Below, piece after piece: positions 2,713 through 60,052 of a stretch of 64,000 bases of DNA. The stretch covers positions 1 through 64,000 of IMG/VR virus record IMGVR_UViG_3300044680_000280; one strand, given 5' to 3'. Below the pieces are notes generated by a model. The model ran no database searches, was not told where the DNA came from, and worked only from the letters and a program-made list of their open reading frames with translations. Both the position numbers and the translations under genes were made by a program. Numbering within the stretch: the stretch's first letter is position 1; every line of letters begins with the position of its first letter.

Positions 2713-3981
2713 TTACACCGAGCGGCGGAGAACGGCCCGAACGGCTTCCCTGGCGGTACGATCGGACGCGACTTTGACGTCAGGCATGATGAGATTCAGC
2801 CAGTGTTTGACGATGGGCTGCACTGTAGCTGGACCGTACCCGACCAGCAAACCCATCACCTCGCAGAATGATTCTTCAACGTTCTTTCCACCGTAACCCG
2901 TGATGGGATGCTTGACGGTAACGAACTTGACCCCATCAGCAAGAAGCTTCTCGAAGTCTTCCCTCGTATTGAATTCAACTCCGCCCGATCGCGCTTGCCC
3001 GTGAGCTATGACGTCAACTTGAAGGGCTAAGAGTGGGTCCACGTCCACGAGTTTTTCTACGAGTTCATGAGCCCAAGCGCCTTCTGGCCAGACCTTCAAA
3101 AGCTTGTCAACGTCAAGAGGTTCGGCATCGTCGCTAATTGCTTTTGACCAGAACGTGCGGTCCGCCTCGCTCAGGTACACCTTGTAGATGTGGTGCCCCA
3201 TTTCATGGGCAATAACGTGAGCCACGATATTTGGATTCTTGTGATCAAAGAACCCGCCCATAGCGATTTCAATATGATCCCCCTCATACCTACCGCCCTC
3301 GCCCATGGTAACATATGCATTCAGTCGAATGGGCAGCATATGCTGTAGAAGCCAGGGAAATACCTGTTTTGCACGGCGTCGAAAAACCCTAAGTCCTTCC
3401 TTGAAACGTTCCAAGAAGCCGTCTTCGTCATTCTCATACCCGACGACTGAAACATGAAAGCCCTCCATCTCGACTTTCTCAGTGTCCCGGGTTTTCACCG
3501 TGTAGTTAGGGGTGCCCGTGACTCGTTCTCGGTATTCCACGAACTCCTTCATCTCTTTCCAAAAGAGCCGTGCCTTCTCCTTTACCTTGGCTGCCCACTT
3601 GTCCTTCTCCATTTCGAAGCTGGCAAACAACGACTCCTGAGACTGAGGATTGTACTTGCTATCCGGGTACCCAAGAGGGAGATTGAGTTCAATTGAAAAA
3701 TCCCACCCGGTCTTCCGAAGCTTGTCACCGTACCACTTACGGTCCGATTCAGAGACCTTGTCATCATACTTGAAGTCGTGATTGAGAAAGGTCTCGAAAA
3801 CGATATGGTCGAAGTTCTTACGAAAGGCTTTGACACCGTCCCGAACCTTGTCCGCATCCTTGTAGCTTTTGATGCGAGGAATGTTCTTCATGAGTGTGAG
3901 AAAGTCCTTACGCAGGTTCTCAATCCACTCGAGGTCCAACGTGATGTCCTTCGCCACTCGGCGATCATAGCTGTACGTCAT
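2713..3981 (-). CDS. zincin (HExxH) metallopeptidase, anthrax-lethal-factor-like, with YDRR leader
   Basis: VIAHEMGHHIY plus downstream GYGGKNVEESFCE; N-terminus MTYSYDRRVAK; C-terminus KVASDRTAREAVRAVLRRSV. Confidence 0.7.
   Translation of the reverse strand: MTYSYDRRVAKDITLDLEWIENLRKDFLTLMKNIPRIKSYKDADKVRDGVKAFRKNFDHIVFETFLNHDFKYDDKVSESDRKWYGDKLRKTGWDFSIELNLPLGYPDSKYNPQSQESLFASFEMEKDKWAAKVKEKARLFWKEMKEFVEYRERVTGTPNYTVKTRDTEKVEMEGFHVSVVGYENDEDGFLERFKEGLRVFRRRAKQVFPWLLQHMLPIRLNAYVTMGEGGRYEGDHIEIAMGGFFDHKNPNIVAHVIAHEMGHHIYKVYLSEADRTFWSKAISDDAEPLDVDKLLKVWPEGAWAHELVEKLVDVDPLLALQVDVIAHGQARSGGVEFNTREDFEKLLADGVKFVTVKHPITGYGGKNVEESFCEVMGLLVGYGPATVQPIVKHWLNLIMPDVKVASDRTAREAVRAVLRRSV
2714..2720 (-). 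promoter_or_regulatory. CGGTGTA upstream element
   Basis: 10 nt before ATG 2703; overlaps the upstream TAA. Confidence 0.6.
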
Positions 3982-9369: not shown

Positions 9370-10104
9370 CTATCCGTGGAGTTTCTGAAACCGACTCGCA
9401 ACCTTCACGGTCAGCGGATCCAAAGAGGCTGTTTTCTCCAGGGTTCCATTGTCGAGGTAGGCGGCTTCCATTCCCGGATCAAGGCAATTAAATCGGATCA
9501 TGTCGGCCTCGAGTCCTACCTCTTCCGCAGTGGCTTCGAGTGCCTTGAGGAACTCCCCTTGAAGGAGCTTCGTTCTTGATCGTTTTTGCCTTGGGAGTTC
9601 GGGACCCTCAGATCGAACCTGAGACAACTTGGAAGACATGATTCTATTGGCGTTGAACCCTCGGATATCACTCATATTGAGCTTGAATCCGCCCAGGTAT
9701 TCGTTCACCATGTCCGCCGTCACGCGACCCGTGTCGTGTGCAAAGAGCTCGTCGTCCACATCCTCGACCGCTTCGTAGGCATCCGCCAAAGCTCTGACGA
9801 TCGATGCGTTGGTGATGGGCTTGCGTTTCCCCTTGGCTCGGAAGTACGCCTCTCGATCATCGAGCTGGACGTTCTTCTTCCGCCAAGAGAAGACGGGGTC
9901 CTCGCTCGTCTCAGCCATGAGTCCGACCGCCAACGCGGTGAGAAAACGATTGGGATCGCTCGAGCGTAGGTCTCGCTTGACTTTGGCTTGAAGCGCTTCC
10001 ATGGAGGATCGGACACGGCTCAGTCGTCGACTGCGAGACCGAAGCTGTCGCTCCTCACTGACAAGCCCTTTCGACCGGGCGCGGGCAACAACAAGGAACC
10101 TCAT
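9370..10104 (-). CDS. type IB topoisomerase-like protein, catalytically degenerate
   Basis: KVKRDLRSSDP...TALAVGLM, VTADMVNEYLGGF, SDIRGFNAN and LEATAEEVG resemble the Topo IB core; the catalytic His/Tyr positions read L/C. Confidence 0.6.
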   Translation of the reverse strand: MRFLVVARARSKGLVSEERQLRSRSRRLSRVRSSMEALQAKVKRDLRSSDPNRFLTALAVGLMAETSEDPVFSWRKKNVQLDDREAYFRAKGKRKPITNASIVRALADAYEAVEDVDDELFAHDTGRVTADMVNEYLGGFKLNMSDIRGFNANRIMSSKLSQVRSEGPELPRQKRSRTKLLQGEFLKALEATAEEVGLEADMIRFNCLDPGMEAAYLDNGTLEKTASLDPLTVKVASRFQKLHG

Positions 10105-11495
10105 TCGGGCTCTTCTGTGGGTACGGGTTCAGGCGCCTCGGGAGCTTTACCCGTCTTGACAACACTCTTGAGCCACTCGGACGGTTCTGGTTTTAGATGA
10201 CCAAGAATGTAGGTGGTCATCATCTCTGCAAAATACTCCATGTGGTTCTTACGGGCATAGTTCGTGGGGACCCAATCATGTAGATGGGTTTTGTAGTCAC
10301 TCCGTCCTTCGCCACTCTTTATGAGGGAGGACAACTCTACGTAAACCGTATGCCTTTCTTCCTCAACCTTTTTGAGTTCCGCCTCTTTGGCTTCGTCTTT
10401 ACCAGCATAGGTAAGGGAATCGACGGATTCAGGCACAATTAAGGGTCCAGGGCCTCGTCGGTAGATTTGCTGACGCTTGATATAAGCCTCTGGGGCGTCA
10501 ATGACCTCCACGTTGACAGTGCGACTATCCGCCTTACCAACGATGCGACCCTTCACATGGTACTGCACACCATTGACCCACGTATCGTATTCAAATACCT
10601 GTCCCTTGCGTGGCAATGGCTTTCGCTTGTTTTGCTCCTCACTCAGTCGGGAATACGCTTCATTCAGAGCCTTCATTTTTCGGTTCAGAATGTCAACCTT
10701 GTTGCTTTTACCGGTCGACTTCTGACGAACAGCCCACATGTGCTTACTGATGATTGCTGAGTTATTAATTCCACCTGGCACCACCTTATCGTGGCAGTAG
10801 TGTCCAAGCTCATGAATGACCGTATGGATAAGTTTAGGATCCTCGTAGGACTTCGGTGCAAACTGAATGGTAGGAGGCACACTACCCATTGTGTAAAGTG
10901 CGCCGGCATGGGAAGCACCTCGCCCGCTTAGTACAGACGAAATATCGTGAACGATGGGGACACCAGCAGCGGCGTACATACGCTCCGCTTCCTCGAGCAA
11001 AGCACCCAGCTTGTCCACGTGTTCTTCGTGCTGCTTCAGATAAATCACCTTGAATCGACCAAACTTCTTCTCGAGAACTACGGACGCCGCATAGCGCTCA
11101 ACGACTCGTTCGGCAGCCGTCTTCTTCTCTTCTTCTTCGGGGTCGGGCGGGTCGGGGTCGTGCCAGATCTTGTAGAGACCCATGATCTTGTTCTTTTTGC
11201 GGCCTTGTGGGACTGGACGAATCTCAATCATCGGGTGTCCACGATCATCGGCCCAAATGCGCTCGATGATGCCGTGCTTGTTCTTGTACTTCCCGAATAC
11301 AATTTCGTCCCCGGGGGCGAAGAACCCCCTGGCGATCAAAACTCGTGCGGCAACTCTGGCTGAGATTGCGTCGGTCGGAGCGACGTCGTCGTAGATTACG
11401 TCCTCAAGACCGTCCTCCCCCGAGCATGCGCTCATGGGTTGGCTACGGCACCACTCGAGGGCGGCGATGCCCCACTCAGGATCAATATCGTTCAT
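10101..11495 (-). CDS. multidomain protein: small beta-barrel module plus HExxH metallopeptidase
   Basis: VIHELGHYCH and NYARKNHMEYFAE; internal motifs RVAARVLIA and KKTAAERVVERYAAS; ATG 11495 overlaps the upstream stop. Confidence 0.7.
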   Translation of the reverse strand: MNDIDPEWGIAALEWCRSQPMSACSGEDGLEDVIYDDVAPTDAISARVAARVLIARGFFAPGDEIVFGKYKNKHGIIERIWADDRGHPMIEIRPVPQGRKKNKIMGLYKIWHDPDPPDPEEEEKKTAAERVVERYAASVVLEKKFGRFKVIYLKQHEEHVDKLGALLEEAERMYAAAGVPIVHDISSVLSGRGASHAGALYTMGSVPPTIQFAPKSYEDPKLIHTVIHELGHYCHDKVVPGGINNSAIISKHMWAVRQKSTGKSNKVDILNRKMKALNEAYSRLSEEQNKRKPLPRKGQVFEYDTWVNGVQYHVKGRIVGKADSRTVNVEVIDAPEAYIKRQQIYRRGPGPLIVPESVDSLTYAGKDEAKEAELKKVEEERHTVYVELSSLIKSGEGRSDYKTHLHDWVPTNYARKNHMEYFAEMMTTYILGHLKPEPSEWLKSVVKTGKAPEAPEPVPTEEPE

Positions 11496-12913
11496 CCTTG
11501 ATTCCATAGGGTGGTGGCTTCAGCACAATCGACATCAGGACAGAGATAAATGGCGTAGGCTGCCAAATCGTGAAGCCAGAACTTGCCCTCATCATGATTG
11601 TCGTACAGGTGGCACACAGCATCCCCGCCCGGCTTCTCCTTGATGGTAATAGCTAGCCTGGCATCCTTACCACATTTGAAGCACTTCGTAGTGGGGTCAA
11701 ACTCGGCCTGGTACGTCAGCCCCGTACCAGCGGGACCGTACCCGACATCCAAACCGCCATGCTCGGCGGCATAGCGGGCAGCAACTTTGAGGGTGAGCTT
11801 ACTCATAGTGGCTTTCTTTCGGATCAAGATGCGGTCACCACCACTATTCATCAATGCAATTTCAGGGTCCCCAAGACGGTTGGGGTGTTGGGCATAAAGA
11901 GAAACGGGGCGGTCTCCAATGATGAGCTTAACAGTAACAGTCCTATCCCCTGTCCGTTGATATACGTCGGCTACGGTAGCGCTCGAGTGAGCTGGAATGT
12001 TTAGTCCCCGAGAACCCTTCTCAACGAGCACACGATCTCTAGGCTTGAGAGAGAAGTCACCACGAATCTTGTTTGGGTCCTCATCCTGCTCAAAATGCTT
12101 TTCGTACTTTTTCTTTCGGAGTAGGATTTGGTAGGAGGTGGGCACGGGTTTCCCTGGCCGCAGGCGAATTCCAATCTTAGCTGTTTCGATCGCATCGTCC
12201 TTCGTCGGGGCGTCATTGACTATGACTCGATCATCATTGAGAATGACCTGCCACTTACCATCGGTCAGCCAAACCCGCACATCATGATCCAGAATGGAGC
12301 CCTGGTATAATTGCGGATTTATTTCTCGCAGGTCCACATCCTTCTTGGGTCGCTTCTCAACGTAATTTCTAGCCTCTTCCGTAGAGATTGGGTCCATCTG
12401 ATGATTTGAGTGCACGACGAATAGGTCGACATCCTCAAGTCCGACAATCATCGAGCACCCTAGTCCAAAACAGCAAGCGGAGTCTTCCATGACCCCGGAT
12501 TGATGAGGTGGCCCGTTCGGGTCAAAGGGCACCTTTGGATTCAAATGGTGAAATCGGACGCCCATTGCGTCCAAACGAGCGAGGAAGAGATCGTCTCCGT
12601 ACCGTTTTCCCCTGAGTTTATTCCCTATTTCAATGACTTCCGTGATGTTGTGCCCCCAAGACGCTCCGTGAGTTCGTTCCGCCTTGGCTGAGTAAGTCCC
12701 GCCCGTAATCCTTCCCGTTCGCAGAATACGACTCAACTCCTCCCCATCAAAAATGCGATACATTTTCACCGGAGACTCAAACGTACCGACGATTTGATCT
12801 GTCATCGATGGGAATTGCTGACGAGCTTTATTCGTGGCGTCACGATCTATCGTAATTTTGATAGCATTCGCTGACTTCCACCTGCTCAAAACTCGAAATT
12901 CGATGCGATCCAC
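11492..12913 (-). CDS. multidomain hypothetical protein with RV-x-x-R leader and C-terminal Cys-rich module
   Basis: Probable GTG start 12913 (MDRIEFRVLSRWKSA); internal MSKLTLKVAARYAA; C-terminal CFKC...CPDVDC. Confidence 0.65.
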   Translation of the reverse strand: MDRIEFRVLSRWKSANAIKITIDRDATNKARQQFPSMTDQIVGTFESPVKMYRIFDGEELSRILRTGRITGGTYSAKAERTHGASWGHNITEVIEIGNKLRGKRYGDDLFLARLDAMGVRFHHLNPKVPFDPNGPPHQSGVMEDSACCFGLGCSMIVGLEDVDLFVVHSNHQMDPISTEEARNYVEKRPKKDVDLREINPQLYQGSILDHDVRVWLTDGKWQVILNDDRVIVNDAPTKDDAIETAKIGIRLRPGKPVPTSYQILLRKKKYEKHFEQDEDPNKIRGDFSLKPRDRVLVEKGSRGLNIPAHSSATVADVYQRTGDRTVTVKLIIGDRPVSLYAQHPNRLGDPEIALMNSGGDRILIRKKATMSKLTLKVAARYAAEHGGLDVGYGPAGTGLTYQAEFDPTTKCFKCGKDARLAITIKEKPGGDAVCHLYDNHDEGKFWLHDLAAYAIYLCPDVDCAEATTLWNQG

Positions 12914-12924
12914 ACCTACCCAAC

Positions 12925-13638
12925 CTATCGAAAGAGCACCGTTCCAGGGGGGAGAATAAGGGTAATGAGCCAATCAACGGCAGCTTCTCGATCGGCAAAC
13001 TGCGGAAAGAAACGGGAGATACTCCCTACGTTAACTGTCTGCTCATCGAAGAGACGCACCGGGCACCCCGACTCGCACTGCCATGATGGTATCGTTTCCT
13101 TCCCATCGGCATCAGCGTGCCCCCTCCAGGCACCCGTACGAGTCGTTGCAGTGCCCTTCTGGGAGAACTGAGACGAGCTACCCCCTGGACCGTTCGGGTA
13201 TCCCCTGTGACCGTCCACTCTAGTATAACCCGGCTTGCATTCTGGGGAGTGAACAAAGATTATATTTGGTGGCCATCTACCAAGGGGAGACGGTCCAGCA
13301 AATTCGGACTCCGTGCGGAAGTGACCAAGTTGTCCCCCATTCATAATGCCTGAAAACTTGTCGGACGTACGCACCGTCATCTTCACCGGCTCGTTGTGTC
13401 TGATCCTACATGCGTCGATTTGAAGTGCCCCGGTACCAGTCAATATGGCCTGATCGATGACCGTAGGCGACGTGAGAGTCTTCCTACAAAGCAAAATGCA
13501 TTCAGTCGTGGGCCCAGGCTTCAACAGATGGATAGTATCATGAATATGGTGACCGTCCTTCCGCACTTGAATCGCACTGTCTTCGTCGCAATTGTAGACG
13601 AAAAAGTAAGCACCAGCGGAGAGGTCTAAGGGAGCCAT
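12925..13638 (-). CDS. DNA methyltransferase-related fragment lacking catalytic motifs
   Basis: GTGALQIDACRI, GRWPPNII and SISRFF resemble the central segment of phage N4/N6 MTases; no DPPY and no FxGxG. Confidence 0.6.
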   Translation of the reverse strand: MAPLDLSAGAYFFVYNCDEDSAIQVRKDGHHIHDTIHLLKPGPTTECILLCRKTLTSPTVIDQAILTGTGALQIDACRIRHNEPVKMTVRTSDKFSGIMNGGQLGHFRTESEFAGPSPLGRWPPNIIFVHSPECKPGYTRVDGHRGYPNGPGGSSSQFSQKGTATTRTGAWRGHADADGKETIPSWQCESGCPVRLFDEQTVNVGSISRFFPQFADREAAVDWLITLILPPGTVLFR

Positions 13639-15240
13639 TCAGAGCATACCCTGTAACATCATTGCCATCTGTTCCTTAGACCTGCGTTCCATGGCTTCAT
13701 GAGTCTGATCATAATTGTAGGGCACAACCAAACCTGGAAGCAGAGGGGAGTTGCCCAGTGAGAGGGTAGTTTCTATTTCGACGATTTGGATTTTCGGGAT
13801 ACTGTAGGAATCACCCCTACACTCAAGTACAAGACTACCACTATTAAACGCTCGGACACGCATGCTGTCTGTAATTGAGTCCCGAAAAGCGAAGTATAAC
13901 CCAGCTTTATGCTTCGTCAGAACGGTTGCAACGAAGTTGCCGAAATGATCGGAAATGTTGGCGCCGCCGGTGACCTGAACCACAAATCTCACTGGTCCCG
14001 CGAACGTGAGTAGCTCCAACGTTCCATCGATACCACCGTCCGCGCTCTTCTTTCCGCTATGACGACCTTTGATTTGGCGTACCACCCATCGCTCGAGAGC
14101 ATGCGGGTCAGACTTGGCCAAGTAACGGGCGTCCTCGATGTCCGAGGGGTATACATTTTTTTCACAGCACGTGCCGAACTCTTTGTAGATCCTCTCAAAA
14201 GCGACTTTTGCGGATTTGTGGGTGAGTTCGAAGCCTAACCATTGACGTCGGAGTCTTTGTGCCGCAATGGCAGTCGTGCCACTTCCCAGAAAGGGGTCCA
14301 ACACGAGATCTCCGGGATTGGAAAACATTTCGATCAAACGAGATATCAATCCCACAGGTTTCTGGCCTACGTAATTGGGGACCCTCTCCCTCGAGAAATA
14401 TGACACGTACGGTATGTCAGTCCACAGATCCTGTACCACCACCCCCTTGTGCTCATCCAAGAACCGTTTAATTCTGACTACACCTTTAGGTCGTTTTGGA
14501 TCCTGAAGTCGACCAAGTCGATCAAGCTCCTCCATTCTCTCTTTAGAGAATCTCCATTGCCGAAAAACTCCCTTCCATTCGTAGGAGTACCCACCTCCAT
14601 CGAGGCCATTGGCGGTAGGGTTATCTAAAGAGTACAATCGACCGTTATCATCCTTGTGTCGGTAGTGCCTCTTGATCCTTGCTTTCAGGCCTTCAGGAAG
14701 GTACTGGTTATAGGTGTAGGAATGAGACTTTGAGTAGATAAGGATCGTATCGTGCATTGCCCCAGGTCGATGTCCGTCACTGTGACCATTCGACCGTTTC
14801 CATACGATCTCAGAAACGAAATGGTCCGCTCCGAAAATAGCATCCAAAACCTCGCGCAAACGATGTGAGTACGTGGGACTACAATGGACCGCGATCGTAC
14901 CAGTGGACGTGAGCACGCGATGACACTGGATCAATCTAGGCCCCATCCGAAAGATATAGGCCAAAGAGTCCGGATCGGCGCATTGACGTATGTGTTCGTA
15001 ATAGCTCCACAAGCGAATTTCAACCGGGCTCTTGTTGACTTTCTCTTCGAATTCGCGGTAGTCCCTCATATCCGATTCCGACCACGACCACGTGTCTTGG
15101 TACGCTTTCTCGTGGGCTTCGCTATCATCGATGAGGTTGTGCCTTTTCCCTTTTCCGAATGGGGGATCCGCATAAATGAACTGGATAGTTAACGCATCCA
15201 ACTCTTCTAACAGAAGTAAGTTGTCACCTGTTTTGATCAT
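13639..15240 (-). CDS. N4/N6 DNA methyltransferase fused to a Mrr-like restriction-endonuclease-fold domain
   Basis: IYADPPF, GQKPVGLISRLI, VLDPFLGSGTT; C-terminal SADGGIDG...VVQVTGG. Confidence 0.85.
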   Translation of the reverse strand: MIKTGDNLLLLEELDALTIQFIYADPPFGKGKRHNLIDDSEAHEKAYQDTWSWSESDMRDYREFEEKVNKSPVEIRLWSYYEHIRQCADPDSLAYIFRMGPRLIQCHRVLTSTGTIAVHCSPTYSHRLREVLDAIFGADHFVSEIVWKRSNGHSDGHRPGAMHDTILIYSKSHSYTYNQYLPEGLKARIKRHYRHKDDNGRLYSLDNPTANGLDGGGYSYEWKGVFRQWRFSKERMEELDRLGRLQDPKRPKGVVRIKRFLDEHKGVVVQDLWTDIPYVSYFSRERVPNYVGQKPVGLISRLIEMFSNPGDLVLDPFLGSGTTAIAAQRLRRQWLGFELTHKSAKVAFERIYKEFGTCCEKNVYPSDIEDARYLAKSDPHALERWVVRQIKGRHSGKKSADGGIDGTLELLTFAGPVRFVVQVTGGANISDHFGNFVATVLTKHKAGLYFAFRDSITDSMRVRAFNSGSLVLECRGDSYSIPKIQIVEIETTLSLGNSPLLPGLVVPYNYDQTHEAMERRSKEQMAMMLQGML

Positions 15241-21541: not shown

Positions 21542-22371
21542 GGTATCACCACAAGACCCTTCGTGGAGTTCGACTTCTTCGGGGACAAGGACTTGTCCGA
21601 GGCATAACAGTAGCCACAAGATAGGGTGCACGATTCGTTGAAAGTGAACGGGTCGACCATGATGGCACAGCCACATGATTCGGATTGGGGTTTTGGCTCA
21701 CCCTCGCAGGGAACACATACGCCAGCGGATAGATTTTGCTGGGCCCCCAGGCCATCCAGGGAGTCCTTGTAAACGTTGCAGAGGCGAACCCTTATACGGT
21801 AGGCATCCGCAATCTGAGCCAATTCTCGCATGATTTGGAGACATTCCGTGGCGCTTCGGGTCTCTGGAATCATGTCGTTTGGTTGTAAAAAGGACAAATA
21901 GACGGAGTTCGTCTTCCCTGTCATCCGAGAGGCAATGGACTCGAAACGTTGGTACAAGCTTCGAACCGAGCTTAGAATCGGAACGGGCGAGAACCGCCAT
22001 GAAAGGTTCTCTCTGCCCACAAGATCCGAGAGGTTCGAAGCCCACTGCGTCGCGGTTTCGATGTTGGGCGCTCCCCGTTCCACTTCCTCCCAACCCGTAA
22101 TCGTCACGTGAACCTTGACCTTGTAGGCGGACAGTAAAGCGTAATCGGCGACCAAGTTCTTCGGGACTTTGGTCCAAAAAACCAGGCTGTGCGTTTCTTC
22201 TGGCGCTAAAGACCACCAGTCGGGAACGCCCGTGCGAACGTCGAATGCTTGCATTTTCCCAGAGAGCAGACTCGCCCGAAACCAATCCCATTTAGCTCCC
22301 GGGACATCGGTCCACCGCGAAAGGCTGTAAGGTACAACCTCAGCTCTACCAGAACGAAGAATCGGGGTCAT
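21538..22371 (-). CDS. DUF1848-like (radical-SAM-related) protein
   Basis: SLSRWTDVP, VFWTKVP, WRFSPV, CGC...DPF..NESCTLSCGYCYA. Confidence 0.75.
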   Translation of the reverse strand: MTPILRSGRAEVVPYSLSRWTDVPGAKWDWFRASLLSGKMQAFDVRTGVPDWWSLAPEETHSLVFWTKVPKNLVADYALLSAYKVKVHVTITGWEEVERGAPNIETATQWASNLSDLVGRENLSWRFSPVPILSSVRSLYQRFESIASRMTGKTNSVYLSFLQPNDMIPETRSATECLQIMRELAQIADAYRIRVRLCNVYKDSLDGLGAQQNLSAGVCVPCEGEPKPQSESCGCAIMVDPFTFNESCTLSCGYCYASDKSLSPKKSNSTKGLVVIP

Positions 22372-23249
22372 CCCTCAGAAGATACACCAGCGGCGTCTTC
22401 GAGGGCTTCCCTAATCGTATCCGGATCCAAATCTTTGAGTGCTTTCGCCGAAATGGCGGCGATGAGAGCCTGAAAAACCTCATCCTGAGTGGGGGGCCGG
22501 TCGTCTTTCGACGCGAGGCGCTCCATGAGCTTTGAGACCAGCTCGACCGAGTGGTGACCGATCTCCCCAAACTCGTGTAGAGTGGGTAGGTGCTGTAGGT
22601 GCTTCGTGACCGCTTTGACCGCGATCTTCTTTGCGGTAGAGCTAACGAACGAGCTCATCACGCCCTTCGTGATGGCAACGGCGCCCGCTCCAAGACCGAA
22701 CCCCGCCCCTAAGGCCCCTGAAACTGCCGCAACCGTACAGTGGATGGCCACTTCCCGTATGGCGTGCTTTTGCTTCTTGGAGACTTCCTTGCCGGTCATC
22801 CAAGCATGGATGCCCTCGCCCGCCTCCTTGAACTCCTTGACCTCATGTTTGGCTACATTGTAGGCACTCTCGACGTATTTCATCGGGGCGCTCAGAATCG
22901 ACTTGTGCGCCTTGAGTAGAGTTTCTCGACGATGATCCTCATCATCAACGAATTTTTTGACGGTCGACGGGGTCTTGTGGAGGAACTCCTGGGCCTTCGA
23001 GGACAGACTCTTTGCCAGGTCCTTCCAAGTCAACTTAGGCCCGGCACCGTGTTCGTGCTCATCGTGCTCGACACCGTGACCTCCGTCCGTCTTCTTTTCA
23101 GAAATCTCCCCCGGCTTCTTGACCGTATGATTTTTCGGGTCCGCCTTGGGATGTTCGTGCAGGTAGTCCTTCAGCGCCTTTGGAGTCGGAAACTCGAAGG
23201 CGAGCTGGTAACGAGCCGCCACACGCAGACTCAACACGTCCCTACGCAT
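22368..23249 (-). CDS. hypothetical protein with RVAARY leader
   Basis: MRRDVLSLRVAARYQLA; Gly/Ala hydrophobic segment VAAVSGALGAGFGLGAGAVA. Confidence 0.75.
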   Translation of the reverse strand: MRRDVLSLRVAARYQLAFEFPTPKALKDYLHEHPKADPKNHTVKKPGEISEKKTDGGHGVEHDEHEHGAGPKLTWKDLAKSLSSKAQEFLHKTPSTVKKFVDDEDHRRETLLKAHKSILSAPMKYVESAYNVAKHEVKEFKEAGEGIHAWMTGKEVSKKQKHAIREVAIHCTVAAVSGALGAGFGLGAGAVAITKGVMSSFVSSTAKKIAVKAVTKHLQHLPTLHEFGEIGHHSVELVSKLMERLASKDDRPPTQDEVFQALIAAISAKALKDLDPDTIREALEDAAGVSSEG

Positions 23250-23250
23250 T

Positions 23251-24465
23251 TCAGACCTTGGTGTACTTTTTAGCGAAATGCATGAGGTGGTCGTTGACGA
23301 ACTCTTCAGTGTCGATGTTCCTGTAATCGGACGACCACATGGAACGGGCCTCTCCGAAGTTGTTCACCTTAGGGCCGGCCGAGTAGTAAATGGCCTGCGG
23401 CTTGAACCAGAATCGGAAGTCTCCGTGGGGCGACACGGCGTACGGGATTTTCAGGTGATCGGTAACCCTCCAGCCCTTGGCCTTAAGTGATGCGAAAATC
23501 GCGTCCTGAGCCTGCTTGAAGGTCTTCTTTGCTTTGACCCGAGGCTTCTTCTCCCTCAGGGGATACGCGTCTACCTTCGGTCCTGGCTTCAGTCCCACTT
23601 GACGCATATAGTCCAAATTGATGATATCAGGTAGCTCATCGCAAAGGTCGAAGATGTCCTTGAAAACGTTCGTAACCTCGTGAGACTCAGAGGCGACCCG
23701 AGCGAAAAGCTGGCGCTGACCCTGAAGAAGCCTCTCGAGCTCGGTCAGATAGGTGCGAACCGAGTGAAGAGCTTCCTTGACCTCTTCACCCTCGAGCGTG
23801 GTGGCGTGTGAGAATCCTCGTAGCGCATGCCCCTCGATCTCTTTTGCTCGATGTTGCTCTTTGGCGGGAAGGTCGTTGACGAAGGGTTCTAGGCTCATGA
23901 TGAGATCACGAAACGTATCCGTGGCCTGAGGACCGGTCCTAATGTTCCAGGTCTTTGCCTTTTTCCCTTTTTTCTTATCCTCTAGCTGAAGCGTAACAAT
24001 GGCTTGTTTGGCAATCCGCTCGGGATCCATACTATGCTCGTCCCGAAGTTCGCGAAGGTCACCGACAAGACGATAGTACGTCGACGTAAACGAGGCTTCA
24101 CGTCCCATCGCCAATCGCACGGCGGCAACCGCTTCGGGGTCCTTATCGGGGAATCGAGACGAAGCCTCTGGGGCTGGGGGCGACAAATCGTCCGTCTTCA
24201 AGAGCTCGTTTTGGACTTGGTCGGCTTCCTTTTTTCCGCCCGGCTTGTCACCCTTGTTCTTCATCGACCAAGCAAGTGCCCACGGGTTATCGATCTCATC
24301 GTGTTTTTTCATCTTTTTGACGGTATTCTCCCACCCAGGAGGGGCTACCGCGAGGTGTTCGTCAAGAAGCGGATCTTGCGCCATGGGCCCGGGACGGCTG
24401 ATTGACGCCTCTTCCTCTTGAGTTTGGGCGATTCGTTGAGCAACACGAAGAGCTAGCTTGTCCAT
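23251..24465 (-). CDS. modular hypothetical protein with RVAQR leader
   Basis: MDKLALRVAQRIAQ; internal RLAMGREAS, RIAKQA, RVAS. Confidence 0.75.
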   Translation of the reverse strand: MDKLALRVAQRIAQTQEEEASISRPGPMAQDPLLDEHLAVAPPGWENTVKKMKKHDEIDNPWALAWSMKNKGDKPGGKKEADQVQNELLKTDDLSPPAPEASSRFPDKDPEAVAAVRLAMGREASFTSTYYRLVGDLRELRDEHSMDPERIAKQAIVTLQLEDKKKGKKAKTWNIRTGPQATDTFRDLIMSLEPFVNDLPAKEQHRAKEIEGHALRGFSHATTLEGEEVKEALHSVRTYLTELERLLQGQRQLFARVASESHEVTNVFKDIFDLCDELPDIINLDYMRQVGLKPGPKVDAYPLREKKPRVKAKKTFKQAQDAIFASLKAKGWRVTDHLKIPYAVSPHGDFRFWFKPQAIYYSAGPKVNNFGEARSMWSSDYRNIDTEEFVNDHLMHFAKKYTKV

Positions 24466-24493: not shown

Positions 24494-25213
24494 CTAGAGA
24501 AGTAACCCGGCCTCATCCAGAGCCATATACACGGCTTTCAAAATCTTGGCCTTACTTTGAGGGTTCATGTAGTCCCGAACCTTCTTCCAAGTTTCACTGA
24601 GGTCCACGACGGCTTCTACGAATTGGTGAGGTCTCCCCTTGTACTGCTTTCGCAGGAGGTAGCGGTTCGCGATGTCGAGGCATTGCGAAACAATCTGCTG
24701 CATGTACGCCCGCACCTCATGGGCTTGGTTGAAGTATGCGTTGCGCTCTTCTGGGCTCTCCTTAGGGTCCACAATCTCGTGGGGGAGAAAGCGACCTTCG
24801 GCCGCATGGGTTAACTCGTGAATGAGCACCTTGAAAATATCCGCTGAGACTAGGGGCTGATTTTCAGGATCCGCAAAGTCCCCGAATGTTTTCGAGCCGT
24901 TAATGTGCACCCATATTTCTCGTTTGACAACCGAGTACATCCCACCCACGGTAAAGGAAGTCGACTTGCTAAGAGTGCTTTCGAATAGAACCGGAATGGT
25001 GATGAAGTCGCCCCCGATTACCCAGACGCTGGTTTCCTGATTGTCGAAGATTTTGGCATGGCGACCGACAACCTGTTCCGACGGGAAATGAGCCGTGTAT
25101 TTTGTGATGTAGTGGGCTATACGGTCGGAATCTCTCTTAATCGCCCCGTGGTCGAGAGGAATTGGCCGGGCTTGAATAAACCTGGCAGCGACTCGGAGCG
25201 TGAGAACGTCCAC
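24494..25213 (-). CDS. HExxH metallopeptidase-like protein with RVAARF leader
   Basis: GTG start MDVLTLRVAARFIQA; LIHELTHAAE; YFNQAHEVRAY. Confidence 0.7.
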   Translation of the reverse strand: MDVLTLRVAARFIQARPIPLDHGAIKRDSDRIAHYITKYTAHFPSEQVVGRHAKIFDNQETSVWVIGGDFITIPVLFESTLSKSTSFTVGGMYSVVKREIWVHINGSKTFGDFADPENQPLVSADIFKVLIHELTHAAEGRFLPHEIVDPKESPEERNAYFNQAHEVRAYMQQIVSQCLDIANRYLLRKQYKGRPHQFVEAVVDLSETWKKVRDYMNPQSKAKILKAVYMALDEAGLLL

Positions 25214-25236: not shown

Positions 25237-26523
25237 CTAACCGTGAGTCAACAAACGTTCGGTGCGGGTGACGACGGCTTCCCCCCTCGCGCAAATGGAC
25301 TCAGCGGTAATCCGCAATCCGGTCGCATCCCCTTCGCTGGGAAGGTTGTACGCATAAGGTGCGAGGGTCTCCTCCACGATGGATCGCAACGACCGTGCGC
25401 CCGTCGGCCGCTTCTTTGCCTCCCGGCCGATCGCCAACAACGCTTCGTTGTCGAACTCGAGCGCAATGTCATCCATAGCGAACAGGGCCTTGTATTGCTT
25501 CACGATTGCGTTTTCCGGTTCCGTGAGGACTCGAACCATATCCTCCTCGCTAAGCTCGTACGTTGAGGTGAGGATCGGCAGACGCCCTAAAAGCTCTGGG
25601 ATGTAACCGAACTCAAGGACGTCGTCCGGAACAACCGTTCGGTATGCTTCGTCTAAGGAGAGCCTCTTTTTTTCGTTGGATTGGGAACCGAAACCCAGTC
25701 GGGACGCCTTGTTTACACGACGGTCAACGATTTCCTCGATGCCAGCAAAAGACCCAGCAAAGACGAATAAGATGTTCGTTGTGTCGATGACGTCGACATT
25801 GGAGCGAACTGTTCCGTCGGCGCCCACAGTCGTCACGGACGCGTTCTTTCCCATTCCTCGGGTGACGGGCACCTTGCACCCCTCAATGATGCGTAGGAGC
25901 CCCTGCTGGACGCCCTCGCCCGTGATGTCTCGATAACCCGACGCGGAACGCCCGCTCTTGCGAGCTATCTTGTCCGCCTCGTCACAAAGAATGATCCCCC
26001 ACTCGGCGCGGGCCACGTCTCCGCTCGCGTCCTGAATGAGACCCCGAAGCATGTCGTCGGCGTCATCCCCGACGTACCCCTGTTGCGTCAAACGAGAGCA
26101 GTCCTGGACGTAGAACGGAACCTTGAGGAGTCGGCTAATGGCGCGAAACGTTTCGGTCTTGCCGGATCCTGTCGGTCCGAGAACGAGCATGTTCGATTTT
26201 TGGATCGCTACACCCCCGGACTTGAGCATCTTCGATGCTTCGCGCCTCTTGAAGTGGTGGTAAACTGCCGTTGCGACGGTCGTCTTGAGCCGATCCTGGG
26301 AGATGATGTGCCGATCAAGGTACGCCTTGATTTCCTTAGGTTTACCCAGGGCAACCTCGCCCCTCTTTTCCCTCGTGATTTCCTTCAAAAAGATCTCCGA
26401 GGACCCCTTAGCACAATCGGCACAAATGTAGGTGCCTTCCTCTTGTCCCTTGATGAGCCGTCCGTCGGGGACCTCGTTCTTTGCGTGGAGGCAGAAAGAA
26501 CAATGCTGGTCGGTGGTGGGCAT
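25237..26523 (-). CDS. clpX: ATP-dependent Clp protease ATP-binding subunit ClpX
   Basis: C4 zinc finger CSFC...CADC, GPTGSGKT, LTQQGYVGDD, DEADKIARKS, GEGVQQGLL, LGF loop, PELLGRLP, TGARSLRSI. Confidence 0.95.
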   Translation of the reverse strand: MPTTDQHCSFCLHAKNEVPDGRLIKGQEEGTYICADCAKGSSEIFLKEITREKRGEVALGKPKEIKAYLDRHIISQDRLKTTVATAVYHHFKRREASKMLKSGGVAIQKSNMLVLGPTGSGKTETFRAISRLLKVPFYVQDCSRLTQQGYVGDDADDMLRGLIQDASGDVARAEWGIILCDEADKIARKSGRSASGYRDITGEGVQQGLLRIIEGCKVPVTRGMGKNASVTTVGADGTVRSNVDVIDTTNILFVFAGSFAGIEEIVDRRVNKASRLGFGSQSNEKKRLSLDEAYRTVVPDDVLEFGYIPELLGRLPILTSTYELSEEDMVRVLTEPENAIVKQYKALFAMDDIALEFDNEALLAIGREAKKRPTGARSLRSIVEETLAPYAYNLPSEGDATGLRITAESICARGEAVVTRTERLLTHG

Positions 26524-26570: not shown

Positions 26571-26855
26571 TCACTCGATGCCCTCGCCCGCAAGAGCCTT
26601 GCTCTTGATCTCGCTCGCGAGCTGCTTTTTCAGAGCCTCAACCTCCTCCGAAACCATCACTGACTTAGCTAGGTGTTTAGCTCTGTACTCTTCTCCATCC
26701 ATGATGGCCCGAAAGTAAGCCTTGGCGATGATGGTCTCGAAGGAATCGTCGGGGAGTTTGGCAACGAGACGCGCCGCCGCCTGGCGAACCTCGGGTCCGC
26801 TCAGGATGGTGAGCCGCTCGGCAACTCGGGCTGCAACTCGATCGGCGATGCTCAC
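26571..26855 (-). CDS. small protein with RVAARVAER leader
   Basis: GTG 26855 overlaps the nitrilase TGA; MSIADRVAARVAERL. Confidence 0.6.
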   Translation of the reverse strand: MSIADRVAARVAERLTILSGPEVRQAAARLVAKLPDDSFETIIAKAYFRAIMDGEEYRAKHLAKSVMVSEEVEALKKQLASEIKSKALAGEGIE

Positions 26856-27625
26856 TTCTTCAGCTCCGCGTACACGATGCAATCTTCGGACCATTTGAGT
26901 CCGTCACAATGAACTTTACCACTTTTTTCGATGACGCAAACGCCACCCTCACCAAAATCGTTGTTTGCTTCCTTTCCCCACACGTTGGAGACAGCGAGTG
27001 CCGTTTGATTCTCTTCCACAAAGTCCATCCATCCGTTGGCAGGCACACCCCCGTCACCCCAGGCACTAACCATTAGAACCAGATCCGCATCCCCAGGTTC
27101 ATAAAAGCTGTTCCATTTGTCGTCTTTTTTGTCCCTTACGTCACGGCAAATAAGCAGACCAATCTTCCACTGTTCCCCATCTATTGTCGTGCGAATTACG
27201 GGAGGGTTGCTTTGGCCCCGACCGGCCCAAATGTAATCGTTACCAAAAGGGCAAATCTTTCGATAACTTTCATGGTATCCGTCCGGACCAATGAAGACCT
27301 GCGAATTGTAGAGCTTGTTGGTACCCAAATCGACCTCAACGAAGCCGAAAGTAATGGTCACCTGAAGATTGCGAGAGATTGACAATGCTCGACCCATCAT
27401 TGTACACGGGCTTACCCCGTTCCAATCGTCTAACCACTGGGGACTCTCTGCGAACGGGCGAGCCTCCTCCTCTGACATGAAAGAGTACCCGGTAGTCGCC
27501 AACTCAGGAGCGCATATTACTTTTGCCCCGTTCCTCGCTGCCTCAACAATCAGTGCGGACAACCGCTCGATGTTGCCCTTCTTATCCTTGAACGTAGGCT
27601 TGAATTGTATTACGGCGACACGCAT
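26852..27625 (-). CDS. carbon-nitrogen hydrolase (nitrilase superfamily)
   Basis: MRVAVIQF, PELATTGY (E), YRK (K), LICRD (C): intact catalytic triad. Confidence 0.9.
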   Translation of the reverse strand: MRVAVIQFKPTFKDKKGNIERLSALIVEAARNGAKVICAPELATTGYSFMSEEEARPFAESPQWLDDWNGVSPCTMMGRALSISRNLQVTITFGFVEVDLGTNKLYNSQVFIGPDGYHESYRKICPFGNDYIWAGRGQSNPPVIRTTIDGEQWKIGLLICRDVRDKKDDKWNSFYEPGDADLVLMVSAWGDGGVPANGWMDFVEENQTALAVSNVWGKEANNDFGEGGVCVIEKSGKVHCDGLKWSEDCIVYAELKK

Positions 27626-33065: not shown

Positions 33066-34670
33066 TCAAACGATTTTCAGGGCGGCGGGCGGCGGTGCGT
33101 TTTTCCGAGTGGGAGGGGCCGCGTAGCGTGCCCGAATCCCGTCGTCGGCTTTGTCGTCGTAACCGACCCATTCGATGAGTCCTTTGACCTCGTCGACCAT
33201 CGTATTTGCGAGGCGCGGCTTCCGCTCGAGCGTCAAGTGTAGAACGTCGAAGCTGAGAGCTGAAAACTTCTTGTTGAAGCTTTCAGTCATCGCCGCCTTG
33301 ATGGCCTGTTCGATCTCTCGACCGACCATCATGTTAGCGGCTTCCGCCAAAGCGTCAAGATCGAATCGTCGCGGGTCCTGCTTGTTCTTCGCCAAGTGAA
33401 TCTTGAGGATTTCGATGCGATCCTTCTTTGAGGGGAGGTCGAAGAAGAATCGCTCATCCAGTCGGTTGATAAATTCGATGGGCAAAGACGCGAGGGAGTT
33501 CGCCGTCAGAGCGAGGCAGATGGGGGCCGTCGTTTCTTGCAGCCACGTCGAAAGGATACCGATCATACGGCTCGTCGTACCGCTATCGGTGTGATCGCTC
33601 GACTTGCCGCCAGCAAGGCTCTTTTCCGCCTCGTCAATCCAGACGATGCACGGGGAAACCTGCTCGATCATGCGGATAGCCTGGTAAACATTGGCTTCCG
33701 AAGCTCCCTGTTGAGACGAGCGTAGCTTACCCGTTTCGAGTTGGACAACGGGGAGACCCCAGGCAGTGCCCATCGCCTTGACGCTGAGGGACTTACCGCA
33801 ACCCCAGACGCCGACGTTGAGAATTCCCTTTGGCGGGGTAAGGCCGAACTGTTTCCCCTCCGGAGACCACGCGGATGCCGTGCTGACGGCCCAATCCTTG
33901 AATCTCTGAACGCCGCCGAGCTGGTCGAATGTAAAATTGCTCGTGTCGACGTACTGAAGGAGTCCGGTTTGCTTGATCGCACGCTGGCGATAGGTCGTAA
34001 TGATGTGCGGTTCGATTCGAAACCGTTTGGCCGGGTCCGGATCCTTCTTCGTGGTGACAACCGACTGGGAAATGGCGGCTGTGATCTCCCACGAGGTCAT
34101 GCCTCGGAAGATCGAGATGTCGTCGGGAACGGGAACCTTGGTGCTCCCCATCGTCTTGTTGAGGTTGGCACACGTCTCCTGGATGAGGGTTTGAATCTCC
34201 TCGTCGGTCAGTCCCGTATCGTGAACGATCTCCATGTACCGAGAAAGCTTCTCAGGAATCGACCGGCGGGGACCGACGAAGATGAGGACCTTCACCGTAT
34301 GGATATCGTTGTGCAGGCAGTGCACGATGTTGAGGATGCGCCGGGTAACGTGCTCGTCCTTGAAGAGCCGCTCGGGGTCCAGGAAGACGTAGAAGCTCTG
34401 ATCGTTGTGCAGGTCTTCTCTGTAGATGCCTTCGAGAACCGAGTTGATTTCGAGCTTCTCCTTATTTACGGTGTGCTTGTGCGCCTCCCAGTCGGCGATG
34501 ACGTCACTGATCTGGTGGAGACCCGTCGTGAAGTTGTAAACCCACGTTCGGGGAAGCCACTTCTTGTTCACCGTCGTCGATAGGTTCATGAGAAATCGAT
34601 CCTCCTCGTCCGTGACGAAGTAGATCAACCGGGAAAGGGACTTGAGGTGCTTATCGAATTCGGGCGTCAT
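33066..34670 (-). CDS. Ycf46-like AAA+ ATPase
   Basis: Degenerate N-terminal AAA-like region, then GVWGCGKSL, WIDEAEK, TAN...LPIEFINRLDERFFFDLP; start set at ATG 34670. Confidence 0.85.
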   Translation of the reverse strand: MTPEFDKHLKSLSRLIYFVTDEEDRFLMNLSTTVNKKWLPRTWVYNFTTGLHQISDVIADWEAHKHTVNKEKLEINSVLEGIYREDLHNDQSFYVFLDPERLFKDEHVTRRILNIVHCLHNDIHTVKVLIFVGPRRSIPEKLSRYMEIVHDTGLTDEEIQTLIQETCANLNKTMGSTKVPVPDDISIFRGMTSWEITAAISQSVVTTKKDPDPAKRFRIEPHIITTYRQRAIKQTGLLQYVDTSNFTFDQLGGVQRFKDWAVSTASAWSPEGKQFGLTPPKGILNVGVWGCGKSLSVKAMGTAWGLPVVQLETGKLRSSQQGASEANVYQAIRMIEQVSPCIVWIDEAEKSLAGGKSSDHTDSGTTSRMIGILSTWLQETTAPICLALTANSLASLPIEFINRLDERFFFDLPSKKDRIEILKIHLAKNKQDPRRFDLDALAEAANMMVGREIEQAIKAAMTESFNKKFSALSFDVLHLTLERKPRLANTMVDEVKGLIEWVGYDDKADDGIRARYAAPPTRKNAPPPAALKIV

Positions 34671-34680
34671 GAGATACCCA

Positions 34681-34686
34681 TACACC
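34681..34686 (-). promoter_or_regulatory. GGTGTA upstream element
   Basis: 10 nt before ATG 34670. Confidence 0.55.
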
Positions 34687-34726
34687 ACAAAAGCGAAACG
34701 GCGCAGCCTAATTTAGGTGCGCCGCT
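34686..34726 (-). terminator. putative terminator hairpin upstream of the AAA gene
   Basis: cggcgca-g-cctaa-t-ttagg-tgcgccg stem followed by TTTCGCTTTT on the minus strand. Confidence 0.5.
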
Positions 34727-44009: not shown

Positions 44010-45323
44010 TCACCCCAGAACGGGTAAAAGGAGATCCATCTGTTCCTTGGGGAGCTTCCCGATGGCGTAGAAAGACACCATCTCAGCGAAGTTCTCCTCA
44101 GGGCCGCCCCGCTTGGCGTACGAGGTGATGAAGTCCAGAAAACCAGTCGATGCCAATGGCGTCCCTTTTAACTCAAAGAACGTAGTCACGGGCATCGTGT
44201 AGACGCTAATACGCCCGTCTGGACGAGGCGTGGGATCCTGAAGCTTCACGGATTTTCGTCTGAAATCTCGGTCCGTCACCTTGAGTTCTACGCCCTTGTA
44301 TAGAAGGGTGTCTCCCCTCTCAGGATAATCTTTGAAGCTCGGGCCACTGACTTTGGAGTGGACGCTGATCGTATTGTAGATCTTGACGATCTCGCTTTTT
44401 TTGGAAGACAGAAACTTTTCGCAAAGTCGGTGCGTGAGCTCGTGACAGACCACTCGAACCGTGTCCGTAGTCATTTTGGCATCGGCTCGGACGAACATCT
44501 CATCCTTAGAGGGGAGGTAGAACGCAGCGATCCTCTCCCCAGACAGGCGGTTCGTAATAAGGACGTCGCCATAACAGACTTTCCCCAAACCAATCCCTTC
44601 CATTTTGAGGGCGGCTTCCTCACACAGACGAGCCTTCTCTTCCATCAACTTCGTGTCAAACCCACCCGTATTGACCACGACGAAGGGTCCAGCCTTGAAT
44701 CTAGTAACCACGTCCCCCGTATCCGAGTGGCTCTTCCCCGAAGTCAGGGCTTCCATAAATAACTTTTCGTGCTTACGGAAGAGTTCCAGATGCTCCAGAT
44801 AAAGTTCAGTGCGTTCAACGTACATGTCCTCAACTGTCTTACCCCTCGGGAGACGGATGTTTCGGGCCCAAAATTTGGACGCGACCTCGATGGACTTTCG
44901 CAATTTGGGCGAAAGGACCATCTGTTGTAGGATGGCAAGGCAAAGAAGACGTGCGGTGTCCTTCAAACGGTCGAACCCATGCTGCTGCATGTGTATCGAG
45001 ATGGCGGCCCCCTTGTCGCTCCACTGCCTGGAGGATGGGTCACGGCCATCCCTTTGAGCTTGGAGTTGCTCGATTCTTTCACGAACTGCTTTGTAAGCCT
45101 CGTGGCCAGCCTCTGGTTTGAGCTCTTCTCGAGTTTTTACAATCTCAGCATGAAGGCGCAGGTACTCCTTGGCATCGGCTTCTTTCTCTGCGTATTTCGC
45201 CACGCCGATCCTGAAGAGGAGGAGAAGCTCCTTCGGGTCGCCGATGGAGTCCCCACGCTTAGTCCGTTCTGCTACACGGATTGCGAGTTGATATCGCTCG
45301 GCGACTCGAAGCGAAACGTCCAT
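44010..45323 (-). CDS. HExxH metallopeptidase (lethal-factor-like) with doubled RVAER leader
   Basis: MDVSLRVAERYQLAIRVAERTKR; VCHELTHRL; SYAKRGGPEENFAEMV. Confidence 0.75.
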   Translation of the reverse strand: MDVSLRVAERYQLAIRVAERTKRGDSIGDPKELLLLFRIGVAKYAEKEADAKEYLRLHAEIVKTREELKPEAGHEAYKAVRERIEQLQAQRDGRDPSSRQWSDKGAAISIHMQQHGFDRLKDTARLLCLAILQQMVLSPKLRKSIEVASKFWARNIRLPRGKTVEDMYVERTELYLEHLELFRKHEKLFMEALTSGKSHSDTGDVVTRFKAGPFVVVNTGGFDTKLMEEKARLCEEAALKMEGIGLGKVCYGDVLITNRLSGERIAAFYLPSKDEMFVRADAKMTTDTVRVVCHELTHRLCEKFLSSKKSEIVKIYNTISVHSKVSGPSFKDYPERGDTLLYKGVELKVTDRDFRRKSVKLQDPTPRPDGRISVYTMPVTTFFELKGTPLASTGFLDFITSYAKRGGPEENFAEMVSFYAIGKLPKEQMDLLLPVLG

Positions 45324-46586: not shown

Positions 46587-46781
46587 TCAGCTCTGAGGAC
46601 GTAAAGGGATATACCCTCGTTCCCACTGGTCGAGTCGACTCAATCTATCTTGAAGTCGAGAGATCTGCTCAGTGGAAAGAACGTTTCCGATCATCACACC
46701 ACGAATTTGCTCCCGCATGCGAGCGGCTGCCTTGGAACGAACATCAGCAGGAATGTCGAGATATGTCAGGTGACCAATCAC
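46587..46781 (-). CDS. small hypothetical protein
   Basis: ATGA coupling to the 1450-aa gene. Confidence 0.55.
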   Translation of the reverse strand: MIGHLTYLDIPADVRSKAAARMREQIRGVMIGNVLSTEQISRLQDRLSRLDQWERGYIPLRPQS

Positions 46782-51130: not shown

Positions 51131-51166
51131 TTACATTCCTCGCACTTGTCGGGGTTATCAGTAAGT

Positions 51167-51173
51167 TACACCG
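51167..51173 (-). promoter_or_regulatory. CGGTGTA upstream element
   Basis: 36 nt before ATG 51130. Confidence 0.55.
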
Positions 51174-51176
51174 GAG

Positions 51177-51845: not shown

Positions 51846-51903
51846 GTATACTCACTCGGGGTTGCAGGTGACGGACTGCACTCCGTTTCGTAGATTTTTA
51901 AGC

Positions 51904-51910
51904 TACACCG
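51904..51910 (-). promoter_or_regulatory. CGGTGTA upstream element
   Basis: 58 nt before ATG 51845. Confidence 0.55.
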
Positions 51911-51912
51911 GA

Positions 51913-57371: not shown

Positions 57372-57378
57372 CGTGCTC

Positions 57379-58023: not shown

Positions 58024-58066
58024 CTCTCCGTTGGTATCACTCGATGTTGAGTCATAAGAAGAACCC

Positions 58067-60040: not shown

Positions 60041-60052
60041 ATCTCACTAACC

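Follow-up and report, generated by a model that had tools for sequence, protein, structure and literature searches.

Unrelated internal proteins of phage T4 have in common a short N-terminal peptide, the capsid targeting sequence, which addresses them to one place and is tied to proteolytic maturation. The cargo-loading peptides of encapsulins and the encapsulation peptides of microcompartments, which are short, position-flexible and placed on flexible linkers, direct unrelated enzymes into a shell of the HK97 fold or of another kind. In polymorphic toxins, a short border motif (VENN of CdiA, the core motif of Rhs proteins) marks the point of exchange; this motif is conserved as DNA and acts by homologous recombination. 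The published concept closest to the system described here is, in the available parts of its descriptions, the polyvalent protein, a string of effector domains in which ART-PolyVal (an ADP-ribosyltransferase) and zincin are prominent and which was proposed to be packaged, injected and self-processed (PMC5512222; PMC9503650). The present analysis concerned an open reading frame (ORF) at nucleotides 10101-11507, minus strand, of a 64,000-nucleotide stretch of DNA from an uncultured phage. This stretch, referred to as the window, comprised bases 1-64000 of the 406,734-bp IMG/VR record IMGVR_UViG_3300044680_000280 (G001). The ORF was a single 468-residue frame in which a leader was fused to an SH3-like cassette and a zincin cassette, each led by a copy of a peptide of 12-15 residues with the core RVAARY, here called the tag. 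The tag itself appears undescribed, and the evidence supports cassettes that are each led by a tag and that fuse and split freely.

Like polyvalent proteins as portrayed in the accessible text of the two sources, the proteins of this phage and its relatives strung together unrelated effector domains (ART-PolyVal, zincin and 2H phosphoesterase) in combinations that differed between relatives, and the zincin, which was proposed in polyvalent proteins to release the units, was also present in these fusions. Unlike the large multidomain proteins of the polyvalent class, the proteins bearing the modules were small (86-853 residues in the relatives; 468 residues with two modules in the studied ORF) and often separate genes. 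In addition, the ORF matched no Pfam polyvalent family, and its zincin was recognised by fold only. Each unit carried a conserved short tag, which was not found described in the portions of PMC5512222 and PMC9503650 that were available. To the extent that these sources cover polyvalent proteins, the present system differs from them by its small genes and fusions and by one conserved label per unit, and it shares their repertoire and combinatorial logic.

The ORF began with an acidic leader (residues 1-45, nucleotides 11373-11507), which was predicted to be disordered, with a predicted local distance difference test (pLDDT) score below 50, and was partly conserved in protein P0002. The leader was followed by tag 1 (residues 46-60, nucleotides 11328-11372, core arginine R51), which scored 13.0 bits against the tag profile, and by module S, a basic small β-barrel of the SH3/Tudor-like kind (residues 61-115, nucleotides 11163-11327), which was also found as stand-alone genes (P0029-P0032). 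The next segment was an acidic, proline-rich linker (residues 116-129, nucleotides 11121-11162), at which the stand-alone tag and barrel genes of the relatives stopped. Tag 2 (residues 130-142, nucleotides 11082-11120, core arginine R134) was more diverged, with a score of 10.2 bits, and led into module P (residues 143-455, nucleotides 10143-11081), a predicted zincin metallopeptidase of the gluzincin fold with its HExxH motif at nucleotides 10800-10814. A majority consensus of RV.ARY was found ahead of the peptidase in 19 homologues. The order of acidic leader, tag, basic β module, acidic linker, tag and metallopeptidase was as described in an earlier sequence-only reading of this DNA, and both tags were above the profile threshold. 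The limit at 11495 given in that reading corresponded to Met5, and the frame ran on to 11507.

An AlphaFold2 model of the 468-residue protein, calculated from a 19-sequence alignment, had a mean pLDDT of 79, with residues 1-52 and 116-129 below 50. Both tags were modelled as short low-confidence helices (residues 45-59 and 131-141), each directly before a confident unit, namely the barrel, with strands between residues 68 and 110 (pLDDT 71-81), and the peptidase, residues 144-455 (pLDDT mostly above 85). In the upstream neighbouring protein, modelled in its 473-residue form (P0033), a domain called module A was confident to residue 368, and the internal tag (residues 372-386, pLDDT below 50) directly followed the last strand of this module. 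In these two models the motifs were located in low-confidence linkers at the domain edges and not inside the folds, as had been expected if they separate domains. Fold comparison of the barrel gave template modelling (TM) scores of 0.60-0.66 to the models of DUF4926, DUF2158, Tudor-knot and SH3 domains.

The peptidase residues H232, E233, H236, E424 and E428 were invariant among the homologues. The model of module P aligned with M1 aminopeptidases with Z scores of 10-11 (APN1, 11.2), with the catalytic domain of anthrax lethal factor with a Z score of 11.1, and with the Pro-Pro endopeptidases PPEP-3 and PPEP-2 with Z scores of 9.4 and 8.7, respectively. As modelled, module P shows the hallmarks of a gluzincin (M1/M34-like), which are the HExxH motif, a downstream glutamate ligand and the zincin fold. 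Module P was without a curated sequence family, as no Pfam match at E <= 0.1 and no PDB sequence-profile match was obtained, and searches of Pfam and PHROGs with the ORF and most of the tagged proteins returned no family. No match to the ORF or to module A was found by tblastn in 50,697 phage records, and Foldseek searches of the PDB with the models of the ORF and its upstream neighbour gave nothing at E <= 0.001; one weak row to an Rhs ADP-ribosyltransferase toxin hinted at an ADP-ribosyltransferase-like N-terminal part of module A, which is not claimed here. The linker at 11121-11162 (minus strand) held a conserved DPDPPDPE sequence, which was kept too at the end of the stand-alone barrel genes. 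Because the zincin aligned with Pro-Pro endopeptidases (Z score of about 9), it is conceivable that the Pro-Pro stretch before tag 2 is a processing site, putative as this assignment by analogy is.

Record G001 overlapped with a second record, G000 (156,162 bp), over 109,150 identical bases, and the two together represented about 454 kb of one phage; the completeness estimates for the two records were 33% and 85%, and neither was full. Tag counts were compared with those in shuffled proteins, and profile hits in the 151 ORFs of G000 with those in 20 shuffled proteomes. The results showed that RVAAR occurred 7 times, compared with 0.06 times in the shuffles, and a looser core motif 11 times, compared with 0.07. 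The profile built from the tag instances scored 8 bits or more at 12 places, spread over 11 of the 151 ORFs, and nowhere in the 20 shuffled proteomes. Four further tags were found in the remainder of G001, and no other exact pentapeptide was shared by as many proteins of the phage as RVAAR, which was present in 8. The mean pairwise DNA identity of the tag-coding segments was 0.515, compared with 0.512 +/- 0.011 for random back-translation, the longest exact run common to them was 10 nucleotides, compared with a simulated mean maximum of 11, and the codons varied freely. Because the identity of the tag-coding DNA equals that of random back-translation, the conservation lies in the peptide and not in the DNA, and a reading of the tag as a DNA repeat or recombination site was rejected on the strength of the freely varying codons and the random-level identity. 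The tag was amphipathic as a β-strand. A membrane-binding amphipathic helix was not favoured, as the mean helical hydrophobic moment was 0.31 and the strand moment was higher.

A module map was scripted for 66 proteins, with the module borders taken from this genome's own proteins. It contained 59 tags, 51 of the RVAARY type and 8 of a second motif, YSYDR, and all of these were located at termini or module junctions, with none inside a module. At least 17 architectures were formed from about nine modules, and the combinations varied between relatives. Among the 50 tags of the homologue set, 30 were N-terminal, with the core arginine usually at residue 5-8, 18 were internal and 2 were C-terminal. 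The tag and peptidase formed a lone gene of 321-344 residues with the tag at the N-terminus, and the peptidase was also fused behind a topoisomerase-like module T (P0003), a HAD-like module, or a second HExxH module, Q, with the barrel (P0004 and P0005). Stand-alone genes consisting of tag, barrel and acidic tail, which were collected by a search with the barrel only, encoded 86-118 residues and ended exactly where tag 2 starts in the studied ORF. Module A was mostly a separate gene of about 365 residues with an N-terminal tag, and it was found in fusions with the Cys-rich module Z, module T (P0048 and P0050), the barrel, module Q (P0062) and ART-PolyVal. The fusions seen were T-P, Q-S-P, HAD-P, A-Z, A-T, A-S, Q-A and A-ART. 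The gene neighbourhood was the same at two syntenic loci, L003 and L068, but the modules were fused differently. The barrel of L068 was a separate 88-residue gene, and the topoisomerase-like cassette with its tags stood before the peptidase; in L003, module Q was fused ahead of the barrel and peptidase. The barrel was found inside ORFs of differing lengths in all five of the other related huge-phage records searched. The folds adjoining the tag were unrelated, including ART-PolyVal (PF18760), 2H/LigT, DnaJ, zincin and the SH3-like barrel. In related huge phages, each module between the motifs was found both by itself, as a separate gene, and combined with other modules, which agrees with the earlier proposal of independent modules; neither of the two outcomes named in the earlier reading as refuting it was observed. 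The further proposal that the tag acts as the boundary of a domain-shuffling cassette is supported at the protein level, but homology of the tag-coding DNA is not what drives the shuffling. Internal translation starts before the internal tags were considered and did not hold up: a methionine was found within 12 residues upstream of 6 of the 18 internal tags (33% compared with 18%), an enrichment that was not significant, and the Shine-Dalgarno signals were too weak in this phage to judge.

The motif YSYDR(R) started two proteins of the phage, one encoded at 2713-3981 of the window (minus strand; N-terminus at nucleotides 3958-3978) and one by an ORF starting at 226182 of G001. In a sister lineage, YSYDR was found at the N-terminus and at the module junctions of the same zincin (P0008, P0009, P0011 and P0013), where the other proteins have the tag. 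Protein P0061 held both motifs, with YSYDR between module A and ART-PolyVal. The occurrence in the same positions and the co-occurrence in P0061 are as expected for exchangeable labels, and YSYDR may be a second label. Further YSYDR tags were looked for in the short contigs L026 and L028, and only those in the peptidase itself were found.

The explanation that we consider fairly probable is that tag-led effector cassettes of the polyvalent-protein kind were strung together, with the tag as a position-independent recognition peptide read by one shared factor. The ORF would then be a natural in-frame fusion of a leader, a cassette of tag, SH3-like barrel and acidic tail, and a cassette of tag and zincin peptidase, and these cassettes would evolve independently. 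The fusion would belong to a set of accessory, effector-like proteins in uncultured phages that form a clade and measure about 400-460 kb; the set comprises several zincins, the ART-PolyVal ADP-ribosyltransferase, a 2H phosphoesterase, a J-domain protein and topoisomerase-IB-like and HAD-like modules. Each module of the set would bear the conserved 12-15-residue peptide at its edge, on a flexible linker; in most cases the peptide is N-terminal to the module, and in some it closes the protein at the C-terminus. The tag would serve as an address label, so that modules could be fused, split and re-ordered freely provided that each keeps its label. One common partner may read the tag, the candidates being the zinc-finger domain of the ClpX that the phage encodes nearby or a factor for virion loading of the kind proposed for polyvalent proteins, and the peptidase modules may separate the fused cassettes after translation. 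With most tags in terminal positions, a recognition peptide that works independently of position is a better fit than a scissile site. The resemblance to encapsulin and microcompartment peptides is one of logic only; the motif is unrelated, and a shell partner would be hypothetical here. Several observations weigh against this explanation. The absence of tags inside modules is partly built in, as the module borders were partly set by the tag positions themselves; tags were fewer (4-5) in the complete related genome G003; no nearby tag was found at the related ClpX loci L034 and L035; and the weak N-terminal tag of module A, modelled at pLDDT 73-79, may pack on its domain. The metagenomic gene calls could also include some artefactual fusions. 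Finally, the tag partner was not identified by the one complex prediction tried, in which two ClpX zinc-finger domains with zinc and residues 1-40 of the tagged ORF 22368-23249 gave a score of 0.01, a result that speaks neither for nor against binding. In a more specific form, which is tentative and possible rather than probable, the RVAARY label of roughly 12 residues and the YSYDR label would be a peptide zip-code system of the huge phages of this clade. Counter-defence and host-takeover enzymes, as a varying set, would be sent by it to a single shared machine (the phage ClpX as unfoldase or translocase, or a virion-loading site), with exchange of label and domain together and with embedded zincins separating the fusions after translation.

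The sequence-only reading had taken these ORFs for true polyproteins in which the tag is or marks a cleavage site and small proteins are released inside the capsid during head maturation. We regard this as unlikely and keep head-maturation cleavage as a minority hypothesis, although several features are in accordance with it. The internal tags were located exactly at module junctions in disordered linkers, the zincin was usually the C-terminal module of the fusions, a protease with invariant HExxH and downstream glutamate residues and a zincin fold is encoded in cis, and one tag kept per module would be easily explained by later separation. A C-terminal zincin agrees with the self-processing that, in the available parts of the sources, was suggested for polyvalent proteins and for P1 DdrB (PMC5512222), and the repertoire of ART-PolyVal, 2H and zincin corresponds to that of proteins for which packaging in the head and injection are predicted; Alt and head-packaged ADP-ribosyltransferases are treated in the same source (PMC9503650). 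The sites of a viral polyprotein lie between mature products only, whereas 32 of the 50 tags were terminal (30 N-terminal and 2 C-terminal) and ORF 9370-10104 ended in a tag, so that cuts there would release nothing useful; because most tags were terminal, cleavage is not favoured as the main role of the tag. Column information showed no conserved scissile-like residue pattern just before the tag, and the tagged genes were not in a recognisable head module. Searches of G000, G001 and G003 for ClpP (PF00574), the T4-type prohead protease (PF03420, Peptidase_S77) and Terminase_6N (PF03237) gave no match, and these negatives are weak, the S77 control having matched nowhere either. The T4 capsid targeting sequence is likewise a short peptide on unrelated proteins, at the N-terminus; the present tag has another sequence, is also internal and C-terminal, and was found with no prohead protease (a weak negative) and no head context. 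Even less probable is a tag without a common partner, as a recurrent structural cap or self-association element or as the inherited N-terminus of a paralogous family kept after fusions. The N-terminal tag remnant of module A, at pLDDT 73-79 beside the first strand, and the methionines close upstream of 6 of the 18 internal tags, as for former start codons, would suit such an origin. However, the unrelated folds behind the tag exclude common descent of the whole proteins, the tags in two models were of low confidence and unpacked, C-terminal tags exist, and the methionine enrichment was not significant. Least credible of all is that the tag-coding DNA is a recombination boundary that drives cassette exchange, as do the VENN and Rhs borders. 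The fusion and fission points coincided with tags, and a conserved short motif where variable modules are exchanged is common to both systems; the present tag, unlike those borders, is conserved at the peptide level only, with DNA identity and exact runs at the random level and free codons.

In a specific form of the label model, which is somewhat unlikely, the phage ClpX would recognise the tag as a degron or docking peptide, with the tag acting as an XB-like tether to the zinc finger or as an N-terminal or linker signal, by which the proteins would be unfolded, timed for destruction by host ClpP, or translocated. This ClpX (25237-26523, minus strand) had an N-terminal C4 zinc-finger domain (zf-C4_ClpX, residues 7-45, 28.6 bits compared with the cut-off of 27) and tag-bearing genes on both sides. 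Its sequence contained a GYVG pore loop and an LGF (IGF-like) loop, and it may work with host ClpP or as a stand-alone unfoldase. Five tagged genes flanked it, and the gene just downstream of ClpX was also tagged in L030, L031 and L036, whereas the two related loci named above had no nearby tag. In the parts of the sources available, the XB peptide of SspB docks on ClpX's zinc-binding domain (PMC3983244; PMC7226468), and E. coli ClpX also recognises sites in disordered linkers (PMC3983244). It was proposed earlier that phage ClpX translocates unfolded proteins or helps in assembly (PMC7824862). Like the XB peptide, the tag is a short linear peptide on a flexible tail, shares ALRV with it and occurs in genes beside a zinc-finger ClpX, and its β-strand amphipathicity is in agreement with docking. 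XB is found at the C-terminus of an adaptor, whereas the tag is carried by enzymes, mostly at the N-terminus; the likeness spans 4 residues only, no ClpP was found in the phage records (a weak negative), and the complex prediction neither supported binding nor returned a verdict. Binding of the tag to ClpX is a candidate interaction, and ClpX is one lead as the partner in the explanation by shared recognition of tag-led cassettes, with a virion-loading role, as in the polyvalent-protein and T4 models, as an equal candidate.

The neighbours of the studied ORF on both sides carried tags. The upstream gene (11492-12973, minus strand) encoded 493 residues (473 in the protein database) and consisted of a weak N-terminal tag remnant (nucleotides 12866-12910), module A (11801-12865), an internal tag of 15.7 bits (11756-11800) and the C-terminal Cys-rich module Z (11495-11740). 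The downstream gene (9370-10104, minus strand, 244 residues) contained the topoisomerase-IB-like module T, a weak match, and a C-terminal tag of 8.7 bits at nucleotides 9376-9417. Around ClpX, the 239-residue HExxH protein of module Q (24494-25213, minus strand) was encoded directly downstream, with an N-terminal tag of 18.5 bits (25166-25210), and a 107-residue ORF (26571-26894, minus strand) directly upstream, with a tag of 13.4 bits at residues 15-28 (26811-26852). A 293-residue ORF (22368-23249, minus strand) had an N-terminal tag of 19.5 bits (23196-23240), and a 437-residue ORF with a weak metallopeptidase signal (44010-45323, minus strand) had a double N-terminal tag of 14.0 bits (45264-45323). 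A layout similar to that of the studied ORF had been suggested for the 404-residue ORF at 23251-24465 (minus strand). Only its N-terminal tag (24418-24462) was real, with 12.5 bits and a position-specific scoring matrix (PSSM) score of 26.9, and the other strings scored like random positions: RLAMGR -11.7 (a level attained at 1.9% of random positions), RIAKQA -12.2 (at 2%), KKEA -22 and RVAS -2.0, for which about 0.5 such hits are expected in a protein of that length.

Besides the studied ORF, the tagged proteins of the phage included four HExxH proteins, a 2H/LigT phosphoesterase, a protein with a weak J domain and a weak topoisomerase-IB-like protein, and one tagged paralogue gave a weak ATLF match of 16 bits. 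PF18760 (ART-PolyVal) was above the Pfam cut-off in the tagged protein at 214971-215861 of G001 and in the fusion P0061. Outside the window, G000 115021-116040 (L065:5871-6890) encoded the 2H/LigT phosphoesterase, with a weak Acb1-like match, an internal tag and a Cys-rich C-terminal part, and it was followed by a tagged HExxH protein at G000 116037-116885 (L065:6887-7735). The 2H/LigT and HExxH domains of G000 115021-116885 are typical counter-defence domains. The tagged protein with the weak J domain (HPD motif) was located at G001 277059-278258 (L018:17059-18258), and its C-terminal part was homologous to an untagged 391-residue protein of L003.

Nearly all genes of the window were on the minus strand. 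Those identified were DNA polymerase A, DnaB helicase, an SNF2 helicase, thymidylate synthase, a nucleotidase, a DNA methylase, an AAA ATPase and the ClpX with the C4 zinc finger. Genes for replication, genes for nucleotide metabolism and ClpX surrounded the tagged genes, which were downstream of a tail and baseplate block and in no recognisable head module. A block of giant ORFs (657-2706 residues) with nearly no family matches began at 46.8 kb (window 46778-63961, minus strand) and reached to about 128 kb of G001. A baseplate wedge protein was encoded within this block at G001 86770-90246 and a tail sheath at G001 123668-128143, so that the block is probably the tail and fibre module of a myovirus. 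A 540-residue AAA ATPase at 33066-34688 (minus strand) belonged to the phage-specific family phrog_8638 (E 3.5e-83) and is, after ClpX, a second candidate for an unfoldase or translocase in the neighbourhood of the tagged genes. A 237-residue ORF at 12925-13638 (minus strand) had a weak match to a DNA-methyltransferase PHROG and adjoined a full N6/N4 methylase (13639-15240, minus strand); its counterpart in L003 had 282 residues, and it may be a split or degenerate methylase.

If one peptide marks every accessory effector module of this huge-phage clade, it would provide a sequence handle for host-takeover and counter-defence proteins that are mostly unannotated. The sorting of many large-phage proteins to one destination, such as the capsid, ClpX or another hub, would become directly testable, and such a tag, portable and aimed at a defined phage machine, would be of use as a tool. 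Tag-led cassettes would also mean that the multi-domain proteins of phages can evolve by fusion and fission of self-contained units of label and domain without a recombination signal at the DNA level.

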